Under the pieces are notes generated by a model. The model saw only the letters and a list, made by a program, of their open reading frames with translations, was not told the origin of the DNA and made no database searches. The translations under genes were made by a program, and so were the position numbers. From the IMG/VR virus record IMGVR_UViG_3300028558_000016, positions 186,001 to 250,000 of that record: a DNA stretch of 64,000 nt. One strand, 5' to 3'. Below, piece after piece: positions 15,612 to 22,519 of the stretch; within the stretch, counting starts at the first letter, position 1, and each line of letters begins with the position of its first letter.

Positions 15612-15833
15612 ATGAAGAACATCAAATTATTCGAGAATTTTAGAACCGATGATGCTAAGAAAGCATTTGATGCGGTAACAGAACTAAGCGCCCAAGAACT
15701 GGAAGAATTTCTGTTTGCACTTTCTAAATACTTTGATGACAGCAAAGAAGAATTAACCAACATGAACGCGGAAGACATAAGCAAATCTTTGCATGACGCT
15801 GCTGAAATGGTACAAAATAGATCAGGAAATTAA
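15612..15833 (+). CDS. CTS-leader protein MKNIKLFENF (73 aa)
   Basis: Shared N-terminal motif. Confidence 0.75.
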   Translation: MKNIKLFENFRTDDAKKAFDAVTELSAQELEEFLFALSKYFDDSKEELTNMNAEDISKSLHDAAEMVQNRSGN

Positions 15834-15834
15834 T

Positions 15835-16674
15835 ATGAGAATAAAATTATTCGAGAACTTTAGCAAAGGCCCAGAGCTTTTGAATTCATTCCAGGATGCT
15901 GAAAGCAAGTTATCCGATAAAGATGGAATTGTATTGCCTGGAGTAACAGGAGACATGACTCATATTGAAGATGCCATTAAAGACATCCCACACAATGAGG
16001 CTTACGTTCTAATCACAGACCAAAGCAGTCACGTTGCTTCTTCATGGAAGAGCGATGTGTTTCTTGTTGGTGGAACTAAGGAAGGTGAAATGTCCATAAA
16101 ACAATATTTCGATGAAGAATGGACAGACCCAGCAGGTGGAACACACCGTGGAAACGAAGAAGATCCAGCCGCAGCTTATGAAGCCGAAGTCAAAGCCAAA
16201 AAAGTTCCATTGAAAGATTTATTAAAGAGTAAATCAATAGAGCCAGGTAATTTCCTTTCAATGAAAGGTTGGCCAAAAGCTCTTGTTGACGGAATAGATT
16301 ATGCTAAGAAAACAATATCTCTTCAATTCAAAGAAGATGGTCCTATAAATGATTATAAGTTCGATGATGAGTCTCTTGAAAAAGGAAATATCATGACAAA
16401 ATTATGGGAGCACGTAAACGAAGGAACCATGATCTCAAAGAGAAATATGGATCTTGACGCATTCAAACACCAAGGTTCTTTCTTCAATAGAGAACCTCAT
16501 TCAAACGATTCTCCTGTTCATGGTAAATCTATAAAAGAACTCAACGAAGAAAGATCTGGCGATCTTTTAATGGAACTAACTAACGTCATAACAAGATATA
16601 AAACTAAGATGAAGCCAGAAGCTATCTTTGATGTTTTACATCTTTTAGCTGAAAGACAAAAGAACGAATTTTAA
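15835..16674 (+). CDS. CTS-leader protein MRIKLFENF (279 aa)
   Basis: ATG at 15835, one nt after the upstream stop; shared motif. Confidence 0.75.
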   Translation: MRIKLFENFSKGPELLNSFQDAESKLSDKDGIVLPGVTGDMTHIEDAIKDIPHNEAYVLITDQSSHVASSWKSDVFLVGGTKEGEMSIKQYFDEEWTDPAGGTHRGNEEDPAAAYEAEVKAKKVPLKDLLKSKSIEPGNFLSMKGWPKALVDGIDYAKKTISLQFKEDGPINDYKFDDESLEKGNIMTKLWEHVNEGTMISKRNMDLDAFKHQGSFFNREPHSNDSPVHGKSIKELNEERSGDLLMELTNVITRYKTKMKPEAIFDVLHLLAERQKNEF

Positions 16675-16675
16675 T

Positions 16676-16927
16676 ATGGAAAAACTAAAACTGTTTGAAG
16701 CATTCGTCAATGAAGACGATATAAGAGCAAGAGGAGTTATTGACAGCAAAGAAGCTTTAGTTGCATTCATGACATCTCTTGTTAGAGGTGAAGTTGCACA
16801 GCTCATAGGTGGAAAGATGACACAAACAAACATCAAAATAATCTTGGCTGACATTGGCTTCGATCAAATCGAAGAAGCTTTAGATGAGATTAAGAAAGAA
16901 GTTGAAAGATTAAAAAAAGAAATGTAA
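16676..16927 (+). CDS. CTS-leader protein MEKLKLFEAFVNE (83 aa)
   Basis: Shared motif. Confidence 0.75.
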   Translation: MEKLKLFEAFVNEDDIRARGVIDSKEALVAFMTSLVRGEVAQLIGGKMTQTNIKIILADIGFDQIEEALDEIKKEVERLKKEM

Positions 16928-16929
16928 TC

Positions 16930-17298
16930 ATGACATTCGAGGAATATTACAACAAGAAGGTTTCTGAATCGCAAGACGATTTCAAACTATTCACGGACTT
17001 CAAGTCTGAAGAGAACAAAGGACTTTATTATCTGACTGAGCAAGAAAATGCTCAGATAGACGAATATGTAAAGATGTTTGAGAGCGAACATGGAAATGAC
17101 CTGTCTAAACTTGACGAGGCTTTCTTTGGAAAAATCATGGGTGGTGTTGCTGGTTTCTTAGTTGGACCGACCATCGGCAAGATCATCGCAAACGCACTTG
17201 GTATCGAAAAAGGAATTTTGTTTGACATGTTCACAAGCAGATTGGTTTCTACCGCTCTTGGATCTGCCATAGGAAAATCCATCGGCCAAAAGAAATAA
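16930..17298 (+). CDS. CTS-leader protein MTFEEY with Gly-rich amphipathic C-terminal helices
   Basis: Leader plus a second DFKLFTDF copy; FFGKIMGGVAGFLVGPTIGKIIANALG. Confidence 0.7.
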   Translation: MTFEEYYNKKVSESQDDFKLFTDFKSEENKGLYYLTEQENAQIDEYVKMFESEHGNDLSKLDEAFFGKIMGGVAGFLVGPTIGKIIANALGIEKGILFDMFTSRLVSTALGSAIGKSIGQKK

Positions 17299-17399
17299 TG
17301 AAGCCGTTTCATGATATGTGGATGGCATGGATAACATGCTACATTGCAATGCTGCAAACCCCATTCATGATATTAAAAGAATCTACAAAGAAGAAATGA
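17298..17399 (+). CDS. 33-aa peptide MKPFHDMWMAWITCYIAMLQTPFMILKESTKKK
   Basis: TAATG overlap at its start and ATGA overlap at its end. Confidence 0.5.
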   Translation: MKPFHDMWMAWITCYIAMLQTPFMILKESTKKK

Positions 17400-17587
17400 G
17401 AATCAATAAATACGACGATTTTGACATGAACGAGGGATATGCAGAAACTCTTAAGCTGGTAGTTTCTTCCATTAAAAACGCTTCAGACGAAGAGATCGAT
17501 AAAATCAGTCAAATACTCAGAGCCAAATTAACGTGGGGCAACATCAAGGACATTGCCGACGTCTTACATGTAGAAATACAAAAATAA
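17396..17587 (+). CDS. CTS-leader protein MRINKYDDFDMNE (63 aa)
   Basis: ATG at 17396; leader variant. Confidence 0.65.
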   Translation: MRINKYDDFDMNEGYAETLKLVVSSIKNASDEEIDKISQILRAKLTWGNIKDIADVLHVEIQK

Positions 17588-17593
17588 TCCTTC

Positions 17594-18139
17594 ATGAAAC
17601 GAATAAAGGATTTTAATTCATTCAATGAATCTCTTGAAGTATGGGCACCTAAAGTAGCATACACTAATACTTTGTACATCATGCCTAAGAAAGATCCAGA
17701 TTTGGATAAGGCAGACATCGAAGGAAAAGAAATAACTCCAAAGGTTCCTCAATTCGATTTAGTAAAAACCCTAACCATAATATTAGCAGATGGAAATTTG
17801 TCTGCTAAAGCAGCTCAAATATTTCCTAATACCGATCTCACCAAAGCTATAAAGAATCCAGACATGCTTGGTCCTGAAGAGAAAGACAAATTGATTCAGA
17901 TATACAATAACATAATATTAAAAGATTATGTGCTTAGACAAGAATATGACGTGCTTCCAGAATCCATAGACGAAAACATGTGCCCTGAATGTGGCGAGGA
18001 ATATACGTCGCAATGCAAATGCATGACAACTCACAAAAAGACTTTAGAAGATTTAAAAAGAGGACATGGTAAAACTTGTCCCAACGGACATACGTGGACG
18101 TACGACACTCCAGATGGAAAAGTAATAGTAGTGAAGTAA
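17594..18139 (+). CDS. CTS-leader protein with C-terminal zinc-ribbon-like domain
   Basis: MKRIKDFNSFNE; CPECG...QCKC...CPNGH. Confidence 0.7.
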   Translation: MKRIKDFNSFNESLEVWAPKVAYTNTLYIMPKKDPDLDKADIEGKEITPKVPQFDLVKTLTIILADGNLSAKAAQIFPNTDLTKAIKNPDMLGPEEKDKLIQIYNNIILKDYVLRQEYDVLPESIDENMCPECGEEYTSQCKCMTTHKKTLEDLKRGHGKTCPNGHTWTYDTPDGKVIVVK

Positions 18140-18238
18140 ATGAGTTGTTGTTTAAATTCACCAAAGAAGAAAATAGAGAAACCTAAGGTAAAAGAAAAGC
18201 CAAAGGTAAAAGTAAGCAAAGAGAAGAAGACGAAATGA
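18140..18238 (+). CDS. 32-aa Lys-rich peptide MSCCLNSPKKKIEKPKVKEKPKVKVSKEKKTK
   Basis: Starts right after the upstream stop; ATGA overlap with the next gene. Confidence 0.5.
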   Translation: MSCCLNSPKKKIEKPKVKEKPKVKVSKEKKTK

Positions 18239-19065
18239 AACACATAAGATCATACAAGCAACATCTCGAGGAAGGACTCATAAAAACTTATGACGTCACA
18301 GAATTTGTCAAGCATTTCAACAAGATGATTGCGGCAAAAGATTACAAGAAGCTTTTATCGAATGCAAAAGTTGATCCTGATGCGCACGTGTGGTTGATCG
18401 TAAAAATTAAACCAGACACAATTAATTTTGCAAAAGAATTAGTCAGTCTAATGAACGTTCTTGGATACTATGTGTCTGATGTAAATTTTCGTGGATATAA
18501 CATTGATGACGAGGCAAACCATCCACCGAAGAGCAACGACGATTTTTTAAAAATAGTAAAACAGGCTGAAGAAGAAAATGCGAGTGCTATTCAATTGCTC
18601 ATTGAACCTAAATTTGAAGAAGAGGCCGAAGGAAAATTCACAATTCTATATCACATCACAGAAGAAAAACATTTGAAGAAAATTCAAGAGATGGGATTGG
18701 TTCCTAAGTCTAAATCTAAAGTAACATATCATCCAGAAAGAATTTATCTTGCGACCAAAGAAGCAATGGCATTCCTTTTTACTAAATACAAAGATTACGT
18801 AAAAGATCCAGTCGTTCTCAGAGTCAACGTTAAAGGCTTGAAACTGTATCCAGACATTAATGCTGGAAAAGGAACGTATTTTACCACAACAAATATCTCT
18901 CCGGATAAAATCAAACCGTTGAAACAGGATGCGTATGACATAATGAATAAATATTTGAAAAATAAACCAGCTTCAAATCAAGGTTGGGATATTGAAAAAT
19001 TATTGTCAAATTTATTAGGACAAGCTCAAAAAGGAATAATATCAACGCAAAATGCGACACATTAA
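18235..19065 (+). CDS. CTS-leader protein with Tpt1/KptA-like ADP-ribosyltransferase-fold domain
   Basis: LYHITEEKHLKKIQEMGLVPK...RIYLAT...VVLRVNV...FTTTNISPDKI. Confidence 0.6.
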   Translation: MKHIRSYKQHLEEGLIKTYDVTEFVKHFNKMIAAKDYKKLLSNAKVDPDAHVWLIVKIKPDTINFAKELVSLMNVLGYYVSDVNFRGYNIDDEANHPPKSNDDFLKIVKQAEEENASAIQLLIEPKFEEEAEGKFTILYHITEEKHLKKIQEMGLVPKSKSKVTYHPERIYLATKEAMAFLFTKYKDYVKDPVVLRVNVKGLKLYPDINAGKGTYFTTTNISPDKIKPLKQDAYDIMNKYLKNKPASNQGWDIEKLLSNLLGQAQKGIISTQNATH

Positions 19066-19498
19066 ACTATATGAGGAATTTGTGGTTGACGAGGGATTAA
19101 TGAAATCTCTTGGCAAGCTCGCAAAGTTTGCTTTAATTCTTCCTAAGGTGATGCAGTATGTTGGATTCGCTTCATCTGCATTAGGAAAACACTTCAACAA
19201 CGATAAGGCCCAAGACATTGCAAAGTTTCTCGTTCAAAATGGAAAATCTCTTGACAACAAATACAAACAAACTGTTGCTTCAGCTTTAGCACCGTTCTTA
19301 AAAGACCCTTCAAAGAAAGACCAAGTCGCAAAGGATTACATTTATTATTTAACAGCCAAACACGTTGGCGGAGGTTTCTCTGACAAAAGCATGGCATTAC
19401 ACGATCCGCATAAATCAGCTATGAACGTTATAGGAAGCGTTGATCCAAGCAACATATTAAACAATGCCAGAAAAATATTTCCACAATTATTGAAATGA
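19052..19498 (+). CDS. CTS-leader protein MRHIKLYEEFVVDE (148 aa)
   Basis: Shared motif. Confidence 0.75.
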   Translation: MRHIKLYEEFVVDEGLMKSLGKLAKFALILPKVMQYVGFASSALGKHFNNDKAQDIAKFLVQNGKSLDNKYKQTVASALAPFLKDPSKKDQVAKDYIYYLTAKHVGGGFSDKSMALHDPHKSAMNVIGSVDPSNILNNARKIFPQLLK

Positions 19499-20082
19499 AG
19501 CACTTAAAGCTATACGAGGAATTTGTGGATGAGGCAATACTTCTTCCAGGACAACAGAAGATTAAAAGAGCTGATGCAATGGAAATTGCTAAGACTATAA
19601 TTGAAGGCATGGGTTTTAAGTATGTGGATCCTGACACTGTAACAACCAATTATGAGTTTGAGAAGAACGTTGGAATCCCAGTTGGTTCAATAAGAAGAAA
19701 GAGGCCTGAAGTTGGAGACATCGACATCATAATAACTTCACCAATAAACACGATGAAGCTTAGACAAGAACCATGGGCCAAAACCGTTTCAGGCGGAGAC
19801 AAACAAGTTAATTTTATTTATGAGGATGGAACAATTAAACGAAAAGTGAATTTATTTTCATTCGTTGATCCTGCAACTTTCGGCGGAGCTCTATTACATA
19901 CTACCGGTTCTCATCAATACAATGTAAGATTAAGATTCGTTGCCAACCAAAGAGGATTTGGAAAACTCAGCCAACATGGATTATTTGATGACAATGGAAA
20001 ATTAATAGCAGGTCCAACGGAAGCTTCAATACAGAAGGCGATGAAGGTCACGCAACGCGAACCTAAAGAACGAGAGAAATAA
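19495..20082 (+). CDS. CTS-leader minimal DNA polymerase X-like protein (palm + thumb)
   Basis: VGSIRRKRPEVGDIDIII; ALLHTTGSHQYNVRLR; LSQHGLF; TEASI...EPKERE. Confidence 0.8.
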   Translation: MKHLKLYEEFVDEAILLPGQQKIKRADAMEIAKTIIEGMGFKYVDPDTVTTNYEFEKNVGIPVGSIRRKRPEVGDIDIIITSPINTMKLRQEPWAKTVSGGDKQVNFIYEDGTIKRKVNLFSFVDPATFGGALLHTTGSHQYNVRLRFVANQRGFGKLSQHGLFDDNGKLIAGPTEASIQKAMKVTQREPKEREK

Positions 20083-20084
20083 AC

Positions 20085-20093
20085 GATATATAG
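20085..20093 (+). promoter_or_regulatory. Putative late promoter GATATATAG
   Basis: Recurring motif, 3 nt before ATG 20097. Confidence 0.5.
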
Positions 20094-20096
20094 TCT

Positions 20097-20498
20097 ATGA
20101 AACACATTAAATTATTCGAGAATTTCAATGAAGGCAAAGCGAAAGCCAATCCAACCGCTGACGAGAATTTCAAACCAATAGGTCCTGAGATAACTTACAA
20201 AAATGAATTCAATGAAACTACGTTCATCGGACAAATCTATAAAGAAAAATACCAAAATGACAGAATTGCTCTTGAAATGATCGGCACAAAAGGAAAATAC
20301 AAAGGAGAAACAATTCTCGTTGCAACCATAAATGTTCCATCAGAAAAAATTGCAGATGATGAAGTCATCATTAAAAACTATTCTGAGAACGAAGGAATTC
20401 TCGATGTTTTGATTGACGCAAAGATAATTTCCAAGCCAATCAGACAAGTTTCCACTGGTCACGTTTCAGCTCCAGTTTGCAAGCTTCTTATCAAATAA
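20097..20498 (+). CDS. CTS-leader protein MKHIKLFENFNE (133 aa)
   Basis: Shared motif. Confidence 0.75.
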   Translation: MKHIKLFENFNEGKAKANPTADENFKPIGPEITYKNEFNETTFIGQIYKEKYQNDRIALEMIGTKGKYKGETILVATINVPSEKIADDEVIIKNYSENEGILDVLIDAKIISKPIRQVSTGHVSAPVCKLLIK

Positions 20499-20613
20499 CC
20501 TATTGAACGTCAATAGGATTCGTTTACATTACTCACATACTTGGACCACATCGTTTGATATATAAAATGAACGATAAAGTCAATTGAAAGTCCAAGTTTA
20601 AAACAATTTAGAG

Positions 20614-21351
20614 GTGAAAAAATTAGTAATAGGTATCGATTTCAGTCTTTTAAGTCCTGGAATCTGCATTATCAAAGACAACACACACAAATGGATCTCG
20701 GTCTACACTGTAGACGCTGATGACCATCAAAAACTTCTCTCTAAGGAAGACGGTCCATTCAAGATCTTGAGTGAATCGAAAAACATCGGAATCAATCTTC
20801 GCGTAAAAAACGACAAAAAAGGAATCTCTTATTCGCACACAGAGCGTAATAAGTTGGTTGCCTCAGTCGAAGAGGTCAGTGCCCTTATATCAGAAATCAA
20901 AAAGCATTTAGTAGGTTTCTCTGGTGACGTTTACGTCGCTATGGAAGGAATCTCCTTTGGCTCAAAGGGCAACACACTGATCGACATCTGCATGGCTACT
21001 GGGATTCTCAGAGACGCAATCGTGTCAGAACTTTTAGATGGACGTTATGATAGGTTCTACGTTTTCTCGCCGGGCACAATTAAGAAGTACGCTTCAAAAG
21101 GCAACGCGAAGAAGGACGAACTCTACCATGCATTGATTTCTAAACCCGAACTTCAACATTTAGAATTCGTAAAACTGTTAGACATGTACAAGGAATCCTG
21201 GATCACTCCTGGCGGTGTAGTTAAAAAACCTCTGGATGATCTCGTCGACGCTACATGGATAGCTGAATTGCTGAAGGACGTTGTTGAGAATGGGTTGGCT
21301 GCCGAGGCTGAAAAGTCTCCTAAAAAGTCTAAGAAACAAAAAACCCTTTAA
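20614..21351 (+). CDS. RuvC-like Holliday junction resolvase
   Basis: VIGIDFSL, VAMEGISFGS and DDLVDATWIA acidic motifs of the RNase H/RuvC fold. Confidence 0.75.
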   Translation: MKKLVIGIDFSLLSPGICIIKDNTHKWISVYTVDADDHQKLLSKEDGPFKILSESKNIGINLRVKNDKKGISYSHTERNKLVASVEEVSALISEIKKHLVGFSGDVYVAMEGISFGSKGNTLIDICMATGILRDAIVSELLDGRYDRFYVFSPGTIKKYASKGNAKKDELYHALISKPELQHLEFVKLLDMYKESWITPGGVVKKPLDDLVDATWIAELLKDVVENGLAAEAEKSPKKSKKQKTL

Positions 21352-21553: not shown

Positions 21554-22519
21554 ATGGAAAATTTCGAACAAGACGGAGACATCTTTAACCTCCAACCAGA
21601 TTCATTCATCAACCCTGTTAAGCCAAAGGCACAGAGTTTCTACCAGCCACAAGCTGACGAAGGTAGAGAAGGAGTTTACAAAGCAGTGATCAGGTTTTTA
21701 CCTTTTCACAAGAACCCAAACAAGAGCAAGATTCAGAAGTATTACGTGTGGATCAACAACACCGTTGACGGAGAAGCTTTCTCAGTAGACTGTCCAAGCA
21801 CAGTTGGTAAGAAGTCGATCTTAAAAGACACTTACTGGAAGTTAAAAAACAGCCAATCAGCTTCTGAGCAAGCTTTGGCAGAGAATTTCTCAAGAGCAGA
21901 GAATTTCTATTCGCTTATTCAGGTCGTAAAAGATCCGAACAAGCCAGAATTAGAAGGCAAGATCATGGTCTTCAAATTCGGAAAGAAAATCAACGACAAG
22001 ATCGAAGCACAGCTTAAACCGTTGGTTGGTAACCCATGCAATCCATACGACCTTTTCGAAGGTAAGTTATTTGCTCTTCACATCACGAAGAAACAAAAAT
22101 GGAACAACTACGACTCTTGTGAGTTTGTAGGAGACAAATGTTCTTTACAATTACCTGGAGAAGCTGCTCCAATTGCAAAGAGCAAAGAAGACATGGCGAA
22201 AGTTCTTAATTGGTTAAAAGAAGGTTCACCTGAACTCGATAAATACGAGTACAAGGATTGGACTGACGAAGTGACTGAGAAAGTTTACCGCGCAATCAAG
22301 AACATAATTCCTGATGGCAGATTGGTTGAACAGATCTTAAGCACTGCTGGTTCAGACAGACCAAGCACAGGAAAAACAACTGTGACTACTGATGCTCCTA
22401 AAAATTCTGCTCATGAAATAAACGAAGTTGCATCTGTTGCAAAACAAGAGAATGCTGCTCCGTCTAACAAAACAGAAAAAGCAGGAACAGGAATGGATGA
22501 CCTCTATTCTGACCTCTAA
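21554..22519 (+). CDS. T4 gp32-like single-stranded DNA-binding protein
   Basis: YKAVIRFLP, DCPSTVGKK, FKFGKKINDKI, WNNYDSCEF and acidic tail MDDLYSDL. Confidence 0.85.
   Translation: MENFEQDGDIFNLQPDSFINPVKPKAQSFYQPQADEGREGVYKAVIRFLPFHKNPNKSKIQKYYVWINNTVDGEAFSVDCPSTVGKKSILKDTYWKLKNSQSASEQALAENFSRAENFYSLIQVVKDPNKPELEGKIMVFKFGKKINDKIEAQLKPLVGNPCNPYDLFEGKLFALHITKKQKWNNYDSCEFVGDKCSLQLPGEAAPIAKSKEDMAKVLNWLKEGSPELDKYEYKDWTDEVTEKVYRAIKNIIPDGRLVEQILSTAGSDRPSTGKTTVTTDAPKNSAHEINEVASVAKQENAAPSNKTEKAGTGMDDLYSDL

Follow-up and report, generated by a model that had tools for sequence, protein, structure and literature searches.

A leader-bearing protein of an uncultured T4-like megaphage belongs to a new phage branch of the ADP-ribosyltransferase fold

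The head of bacteriophage T4 holds a handful of proteins that are addressed to it by an N-terminal capsid-targeting sequence (CTS). The CTS is ten residues long and suffices for packaging; residues 4 and 7 are important for targeting, and the T4 protease gp21 cuts after L/I-x-E (PMC9026906). One of these proteins, Alt, is packaged and injected as an ADP-ribosyltransferase (ART) (PMC9026906), and both ARTs and Nudix proteins have been predicted to be head-packaged in myoviruses (PMC9503650). The packaged phage ART is already an established idea, known from Alt and predicted to be common in myoviruses. Described here is a 276-residue protein encoded by a single 482,156-bp IMG/VR virus record (36.8% G+C), within the 64,000-nucleotide stretch at bases 186,001–250,000 of that record that was analysed as a whole (the window). 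The record represents a T4-like megaphage of 482 kb from rhizosphere metagenomes, uncultured and known only from metagenomes. What is new is the large unnamed family to which the protein belongs, its architecture, and an address tag found on about 80 proteins. In its C-terminal half the protein represents a branch of the ART fold that is new and widespread among phages; the fold uses nicotinamide adenine dinucleotide (NAD).

Two enzymes that modify nucleic acids, Tpt1/KptA and DarT1, are the nearest relatives of this half. Tpt1/KptA is an RNA 2′-phosphotransferase, whose essential catalytic tetrad is formed by Arg16, His17 and Arg64 in the N-lobe together with Arg119 (PMC8464070). DarT1 is an ART acting on single-stranded DNA and the toxin of DarTG. 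Arr (PF12120) and the DUF952-like protein CC0527 resemble the domain in another way, as minimal single-domain ART folds of about 110–140 amino acids. Arr uses an H-Y-D triad, a candidate parallel to H140-Y171-D207 of the protein.

The full-length protein was modelled with AlphaFold2 (AF2) from 8 sequences, with a mean predicted local distance difference test score (pLDDT) of 72.5. When the model was compared with the PDB by Foldseek, the best 18 matches were all Tpt1/KptA (E 3.8e-7 to 4e-4). Superposition by VIA placed model residues 126–235 on the KptA C-lobe with a Z score of 10.5 (root-mean-square deviation 2.0 Å over 89 residues, 21–26% identity), and the domain scored Z 8.7 against CC0527, 7.6 against DarT1 and about 7 against scabin and pertussis toxin; DarT, scabin and the pertussis and cholera toxins together spanned Z 6–7.6. 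A profile built from 128 domain sequences matched, among 177,635 PDB sequences and at E≤10, only DarT1 (1.7e-5) and Tpt1/KptA chains (8.8e-4 to 0.23). The protein itself has no match to PF01885 at E≤0.1, and a six-frame search of the whole genome with PF01885 returned only one match, of 12.5 bits, in another gene. PF01885 is touched individually, below threshold, by 25 of the 128 relatives, and the multi-domain relative P0019 exceeds its gathering score. Together, the profile matches in the PDB, the PF01885 matches of the relatives and the score of P0019 establish homology of the C-terminal domain both with the C-lobe that binds NAD in Tpt1/KptA and with DarT.

These comparisons bear out the preliminary description, which had placed the C-terminal domain in the Tpt1/KptA–DUF952 corner of the ART fold, with two corrections. 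The domain spans about residues 127–235 rather than the 165–260 given there, and the H-x-T/GL-x-P/YL pattern taken as the mark of the Tpt1/KptA–DUF952 branch fits Tpt1 but fits DarT1 at least as well by sequence. The frame itself is open as described and contains all of the strings quoted from it: LYHIT (138–142), GLVP (154–157), RIYLA (169–173), VLRVNV (194–199) and ISPDKI (221–226). In the ESM Atlas the neighbours of the protein are viral 'hypothetical proteins', and Arr is the nearest named cluster of the feature search (0.86, under the lead threshold of 0.9); no sequence-profile match of the domain to Arr or CC0527 was found. Alt, a 682-residue member of the R-S-E clade, has no sequence relation to the protein, and a search of the genome for Alt homologues, of unknown sensitivity, found none.

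The 128 ART-domain sequences share 25–45% pairwise identity. G154 and D207 are invariant among them, and Y139, H140, T142, I150, L155, P157, K162, H166, P167, R169, Y171, N220 and I221 are at least 90% conserved; the persistence of these residues at such divergence argues for an active enzyme. Residue equivalences were taken from a HMMER alignment to Runella Tpt1 (RslTpt1), with contacts as reported for that enzyme (PMC8464070). H140, T142, I150, G154 and G213–T214 align to contact residues of Tpt1 (Table 1), so that by this alignment the NAD site has kept both its adenosine side and its nicotinamide strand. H140 is in motif 1 on β1, and Y171 of motif 2 aligns to H123 of Runella Tpt1; the motif reads R-I-Y-L-A in the protein and H-V-H-L-S in Tpt1/KptA. 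The position of the canonical catalytic Glu/Asp/Gln (motif 3, start of β5) aligns to G213/T214, where the protein, like Tpt1/KptA, shows no acid. Among residues that might act as a catalytic acid, the foremost candidate is D207, in the loop preceding β5.

The likeness to the Tpt1/KptA C-lobe thus extends to the split-sheet fold, H-x-T, an adenine-stacking Ile, a G-L/I turn and a G-[VT]-aromatic nicotinamide strand. The protein is not a Tpt1 orthologue, because the RNA-binding N-lobe with three of the four tetrad residues (Arg-His-Arg) is replaced by an unrelated domain. The fourth, Arg119, aligns to Y165, a variable position in the family; K160, K162 and R169, conserved nearby, might substitute for it. 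The loop between G-L-x-P and β2 is a conserved basic K-S-K-S-K...H-P-x-R in the family, and the corresponding loop supplies the Arg that binds phosphate in Tpt1, and in DarT the catalytic one. DarT1, the best sequence-profile match, shares L-[YF]-H-x-T...N-L..IL..GL with the protein, as well as a basic residue followed by x3-H-P before β2. The DarT1 profile alignment spans only DarT1 residues 10–94 and puts K162 on a conserved Arg of the NAD loop and H166-P167 on H-P, with no counterpart aligned to E152, the catalytic Glu of DarT1. The protein differs from DarT1/DarT2 also in being phage-borne, in its extra N-terminal domain and in having no DarG or NADAR partner.

The domain that stands in place of the Tpt1 N-lobe (residues 14–126) was modelled alone from a 126-sequence alignment, with a pLDDT of 92.6. 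The model is a ferredoxin-like α/β fold peculiar to the family. Its best PDB match, PilO (Z 7.2), is within the noise level, Foldseek found no specific relative (E > 0.01), and the best 50 of 48,161 structures compared with it include no Tpt1 chain. An identity with the winged-helix RNA-binding N-lobe of Tpt1 was ruled out by this model and the missing Tpt1 match. The N-domain may serve to recognise the substrate.

The ART-domain family was collected by an exhaustive profile search; a word-based search found seven relatives only. It comprises at least 2,467 cluster representatives (50% identity) at E≤1e-3, and 1,012 at E≤1e-10. Most members have 220–250 residues and the same two-domain layout, in which a Tpt1/DarT-type NAD lobe is joined to the new N-domain. 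The family lies outside Pfam and PHROGs, against which the protein itself gave nothing significant, and is almost absent from cultured phages: tblastn against GenBank phages found only unannotated 642–735-kb uncultured phages (LR756501-3), Lak phages and one Bacillus jumbo phage, in which the match is a 'hypothetical protein', and blastn with the region of the gene found no match there. All ten homologue contexts examined are phage contigs, several of them T4-like (gp13, sheath, gp32, UvsX, terminase, topoisomerase II), and a scan with the 8-sequence alignment placed further homologues on IMG/VR contigs of 82–212 kb. No neighbour family is shared across the ten contexts apart from gp32, which occurs in three of them. 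The neighbours in the window have no DarG macrodomain or NADAR domain, and the homologues have no conserved antitoxin-like neighbour. Without a conserved neighbour, the protein is not part of a toxin–antitoxin pair. The ART domain also occurs within long multi-domain proteins, namely P0078 (2613 residues), P0060 (1654), P0019 (958, with three matching stretches) and P0025 (896); some of these long proteins hold several ART-like copies, reminiscent of polyvalent virion proteins.

Many open reading frames (ORFs) of the genome start with a leader of about 13 residues and the consensus MKHIKLFE[EN]F[LIVN]NE. A regular expression for the leader matched 61 ORFs in the genome and 0–2 in codon shuffles, and a position-specific scoring matrix (PSSM) scored 80 ORF starts of the 482-kb genome, and none of a codon shuffle, at ≥8 bits. 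The leader-bearing ORFs lie mostly in tight head-to-tail arrays, at 147–159 kb, 201–206 kb and 458–476 kb of the record. The third positions of the leader codons vary freely (ATT/ATA/ATC/CTA/TTA; GAA/GAG and TTT/TTC each about 1:1), and no 8-mer beyond A-rich sequence is enriched upstream of these ORFs. With synonymous codons free and no conserved upstream DNA motif, selection on the leader acts at the peptide level. The T4 late-promoter motif TATAAATA is missing upstream of all 61 ORFs, and no mention of the exact leader peptide turned up in a literature search.

The leader resembles the T4 CTS. As read in the T4 record, IPII and IPIII begin with MKTYQEFIAE/A (the slash marks the cleavage site), IPI with MKTFKEFTSTTTPVSTITE/A (MKTFKEF...ITE) and Alt with MELITELFDE/D. 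Leader and CTS have in common M1, K2, a hydrophobic residue at position 4, K/Q at 5 and F at 7, and the leader carries one or two L/I-x-E sites (L-F-E and [LIV]-N-E). The parallel with T4 Alt, IPI, IPII and IPIII thus takes in the M-K-x-hydrophobic-x-x-F leader with its final L/I-x-E and the presence of a protease of gp21 type and a capsid of gp23 type; in both phages an ART stands behind the leader and one leader is reused on unrelated cargo. T4 carries it on a handful of proteins, whereas the leader here is on about 80 ORFs. The class of packaging-type leaders noted in the preliminary description is therefore real by the count against shuffled sequence, and its likeness to T4 stands, with a matching gp21-type protease in the genome.

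The kinds of protein behind the leader correspond to domain classes for which head packaging in myoviruses has been predicted (PMC9503650). Among the leader-bearing proteins are a Nudix hydrolase (PF00293, 8.4e-17) and a DUF2314 protein (5.1e-7), and one leader ORF matches LPD11 (2.8e-31), a domain of polyvalent virion proteins. A second leader-bearing ART-like protein, of 402 residues, is encoded outside the window. Its residues 293–388 (F-Y-H-A-T...V-Y-L-S) match an RNA 2′-phosphotransferase PHROG weakly (1.5e-4), PF01885 with 12.5 bits and phrog_38345 at 3.7e-14, and an L-Y-H-T-S string stands immediately behind its leader. Another leader ORF, containing 'IYHFT', has no significant relation to the ART family described here.

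The N-terminus of the protein itself, MKHIRSYKQHLEE, scores 9.6 bits with the leader PSSM, over every shuffled ORF. A homologue with 49% identity, P0004, has a canonical leader, MKHLKLYEQFVEE, followed by GLIKT, and leader-like peptides start 36 of 156 family representatives. Extensions of 2–71 residues precede a near-invariant [LIVMF]-x-E-G-L-I across the family, with a hydrophobic P3 residue in 110 of 119 members; some members start almost at E-G-L-I, which indicates that the extension is dispensable for the fold. In the AF2 model residues 1–16 have a pLDDT below 50. The pattern would suit a removable propeptide cleaved after E13 at a gp21-type L/I-x-E site.

The genome encodes a protease of the appropriate family. 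The gp21-family S77 domain (PF03420, 30.8 bits against a cut-off of 27) lies in a 699-residue ORF, residues 57–172 of which form an S77/S80-type prohead protease domain. This ORF is directly upstream of the gene for a 507-residue Gp23-type capsid protein (PF07068, E 6.5e-44), whose N-terminus carries I-I-E and L-N-E sites. The protease ORF also carries acidic PGEED-like repeats and is possibly a protease–scaffold fusion.

With its T4-style leader, the protein is probably packaged in the head and enters the host together with the DNA. It is accordingly read here as a pro-enzyme, composed of a capsid-targeting propeptide, a ferredoxin-like domain and a minimal ART, that is injected and likely acts on nucleic acid; a rough probability of one half is assigned to this reading as a whole. 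The 13-residue T4-type propeptide would dock the protein in the scaffolding core of the prohead, and cleavage by the gp21-family (S77) protease after L11-E12-E13 would then free a mature protein that starts with G14-L-I. By alignment to the RslTpt1 contacts, the ART domain would bind NAD+ through H140 and T142 (adenosine ribose), I150, G154 and L155 (adenine) and Y171. The mature enzyme would be ejected with the DNA and would use NAD+ to ADP-ribosylate a host target at the start of infection; the ends of the phage DNA are a possible alternative target.

By analogy, the ADP-ribose would most likely go to a phosphate or base in nucleic acid and not to the side chain of a protein. This is favoured because the position of the catalytic Glu is G213/T214 as in Tpt1, because a conserved basic loop replaces the Arg loop of Tpt1/DarT, and because nucleic acids are what its nearest relatives, both Tpt1 and DarT1, modify. 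A broader and doubtful extension would make the protein one of about 80 leader-addressed cargoes, the largest T4-type injected repertoire inferred so far, and its family a very large, uncharacterised group of phage enzymes, packaged in the head, that deliver a 'first strike' by ADP-ribosylating the ends or bases of nucleic acids as they enter. Such enzymes might, for example, protect the linear phage DNA from host exonucleases by capping its 5′-phosphate ends on arrival, or mark host RNA or DNA.

If the acceptor were defined, the early steps of phage infection would gain a new ADP-ribosylation reaction, on nucleic acid or on protein. The leader, if validated, would be a natural portable address tag on about 80 proteins, which could then be read off directly as candidates for injected effectors and anti-defence proteins of an uncultured phage of 482 kb. 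The T4 capsid-targeting mechanism, which is used in phage engineering, would thereby gain a second test case.

The main rival to a nucleic-acid acceptor is a protein target, with the injected ART redirecting the cell by mono-ADP-ribosylation of host proteins, of which RNA polymerase and translation factors are examples. Alt itself is the precedent, the niche is open in a genome with no detected Alt homologue, and the invariant D207 could act as the catalytic acid. The niche argument is limited by the sensitivity of the Alt search, however, and the domain belongs to the H-type Tpt1/DarT corner rather than to Alt's R-S-E clade, has no acid at the canonical Glu position, and has as its closest characterised relatives enzymes that all act on nucleic acids or phosphates; an Alt-like role is therefore unlikely. 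The preliminary description had also considered that RNA 2′-phosphates are removed after anti-phage tRNA cleavage, and a genuine Tpt1/KptA that repairs tRNAs cut by host anticodon nucleases would agree with the best structural match and with reports of KptA for RNA repair in jumbo phages (PMC7824862; PMC9503650). Such an activity is highly improbable in a protein in which the N-lobe with Arg16, His17 and Arg64 has given way to an unrelated fold, Arg119 falls on a variable position and PF01885 does not match; moreover, an RNA-ligase or 2H neighbour is not conserved, and a repair enzyme has no obvious use for a packaging leader. Also quite improbable is a function other than transfer, as an NAD+ glycohydrolase or a sponge of immune signals derived from NAD or ADP-ribose, directed against Thoeris-like or NAD-depletion defences. 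ART-fold NADases do occur in conflict systems (PMC9503650), the canonical catalytic Glu is missing, and a Tad6-annotated viral cluster is among the structural neighbours in the Atlas, at template-modelling (TM) scores of only 0.42/0.32. Neither score reaches 0.5, the protein showed no sequence relation to known sponges, and the conserved basic loop and the additional conserved N-domain suggest a macromolecular acceptor.

A different kind of alternative concerns the leader rather than the enzyme. The protein could be an ordinary cytoplasmic early or middle protein, with the leader a tag of another sort (for assembly, localisation, stability or translation start) that was spread by recombination. 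The neighbours of the gene serve replication and recombination (RuvC-like, gp32), and the head genes lie elsewhere; the leader ORFs have no late-promoter motif; about 80 cargo species are without precedent; and family members in other phages have no leader or start almost at E-G-L-I. Against this stand the selection on the leader peptide, its resemblance to the T4 CTS at positions shown to matter, its one or two terminal L/I-x-E sites in a genome with a gp21-family protease, and the agreement of the cargo classes with those predicted to be packaged (PMC9503650); the T4 alt and ip genes likewise lie apart from the head genes. A cytoplasmic role is thus considered rather unlikely, if less so than the enzymatic alternatives above. 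Several points nevertheless weaken the case for an injected pro-enzyme. Packaging, cleavage at E13, NAD turnover and the acceptor have each been inferred for this protein, and the preference for nucleic acid is an argument purely from analogy. The protein is a weak member of the leader class, its full-length model derives from few sequences, and some 80 packaged proteins would far exceed the handful of T4. The conservation of E-G-L-I, which reaches a pLDDT of up to about 78 in the deep-alignment model, may be structural and not mark a cleavage site. No leader array is present within ±8 kb of the homologues in other phage contigs, and no S77 protease was detected in five other family-carrying records, though this negative is uninformative, the records being 6–82% complete and the control genomes silent as well.

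Table 1. Coordinates of the gene, its domains and residues, and the other loci mentioned. Positions are those of the window unless the record or residues are named.
Feature	Position	Strand	Remark
Gene of the 276-residue protein	18235..19065	+	ATG-initiated ORF, 276 aa plus stop
Leader, residues 1–13 (MKHIRSYKQHLEE)	18235..18273	+	divergent copy of the genome-wide leader, ends L11-E12-E13
N-domain, residues 14–126	18274..18612	+	family-specific, ferredoxin-like α/β; begins with near-invariant G-L-I
ART-fold domain, residues 127–235	18613..18939	+	predicted from fold and profile comparisons
Helical tail, residues 236–276	18940..19062	+	low-confidence model; only in closest homologues P0001–P0005
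Conserved ART-domain motifs	residues H140-x-T142, I150, G154-L-x-P157, K160/K162, H166-P167-x-R169-I-Y171, D207, N220-I221		alignment
H140 = Tpt1 H99	residue 140		adenosine 2′-OH contact, by alignment (PMC8464070)
T142 = Tpt1 T101	residue 142		adenosine 2′-OH contact, by alignment (PMC8464070)
I150 = Tpt1 I109	residue 150		adenine contact, by alignment (PMC8464070)
G154 = Tpt1 G113	residue 154		adenine contact, by alignment (PMC8464070)
G213-T214 = Tpt1 G164-V165	residues 213–214		nicotinamide strand, by alignment (PMC8464070)
Leader ORFs in the window (10), starts	15612, 15835, 16676, 17594, 18235, 19052, 19495, 20097, 34361, 34549	+	include both neighbours of the gene
Upstream leader-ORF run (15612..18139)	15612-15830, 15835-16674, 16676-16927, 17594-18139	+	0 Pfam matches
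Downstream leader-ORF run (19052..20498)	19052-19498, 19495-20082, 20097-20498	+	leader at each start
PolX-like gene	19495..20082	+	leader-bearing, 195 aa
Hairpin	20499..20517		perfect, 8 bp
RuvC-like resolvase gene	20614..21351	+	phrog_159, 3e-15
gp32-type gene	21554..22519	+	PF08804 7.3e-14; phrog_224 4.5e-34
Gp23-type capsid gene	record 66728..68251	-	PF07068 at 66788–68023
Prohead protease ORF (locus L025)	record 68283..70385	-	PF03420 at 69867–70217
402-residue ART-like protein	record 268755..269960 (L012:2755-3960)	+	leader-bearing
Nudix hydrolase	record 381211..381705	+	leader-bearing
Leader ORF with 'IYHFT'	record 432857..433381
DUF2314 protein	record 466258..466590	-	leader-bearing

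The gene is packed head-to-tail with other ORFs of the plus strand, and its last 14 nt overlap the next leader-bearing ORF. Opposite-strand ORFs at the gene are short and unsupported, sigma-70-like promoters and terminators near it are no more frequent than expected from shuffled sequence, and no tRNA was found in the window. The region is present in at least six rhizosphere metagenome runs, none of which is an RNA run. Two genes downstream, the leader-bearing PolX-like ORF encodes a minimal Pol-beta/PolX-like protein with matches to the thumb (2.9e-15) and palm (2e-4). Downstream of the leader-ORF array follow the RuvC-like resolvase and the T4 gp32-type single-stranded DNA-binding protein, and the hairpin lies between the array and these two genes. 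Outside this genome, the leader array is found only in the closely related L005, a Logan contig of 24 kb that is syntenic with the window at 12–21 kb. L005 encodes a homologue 55% identical to the protein and carries the leader on seven neighbouring ORFs. The PolX-like gene and a 133-residue gene are absent from it, indicating that the cargo array varies between close relatives.

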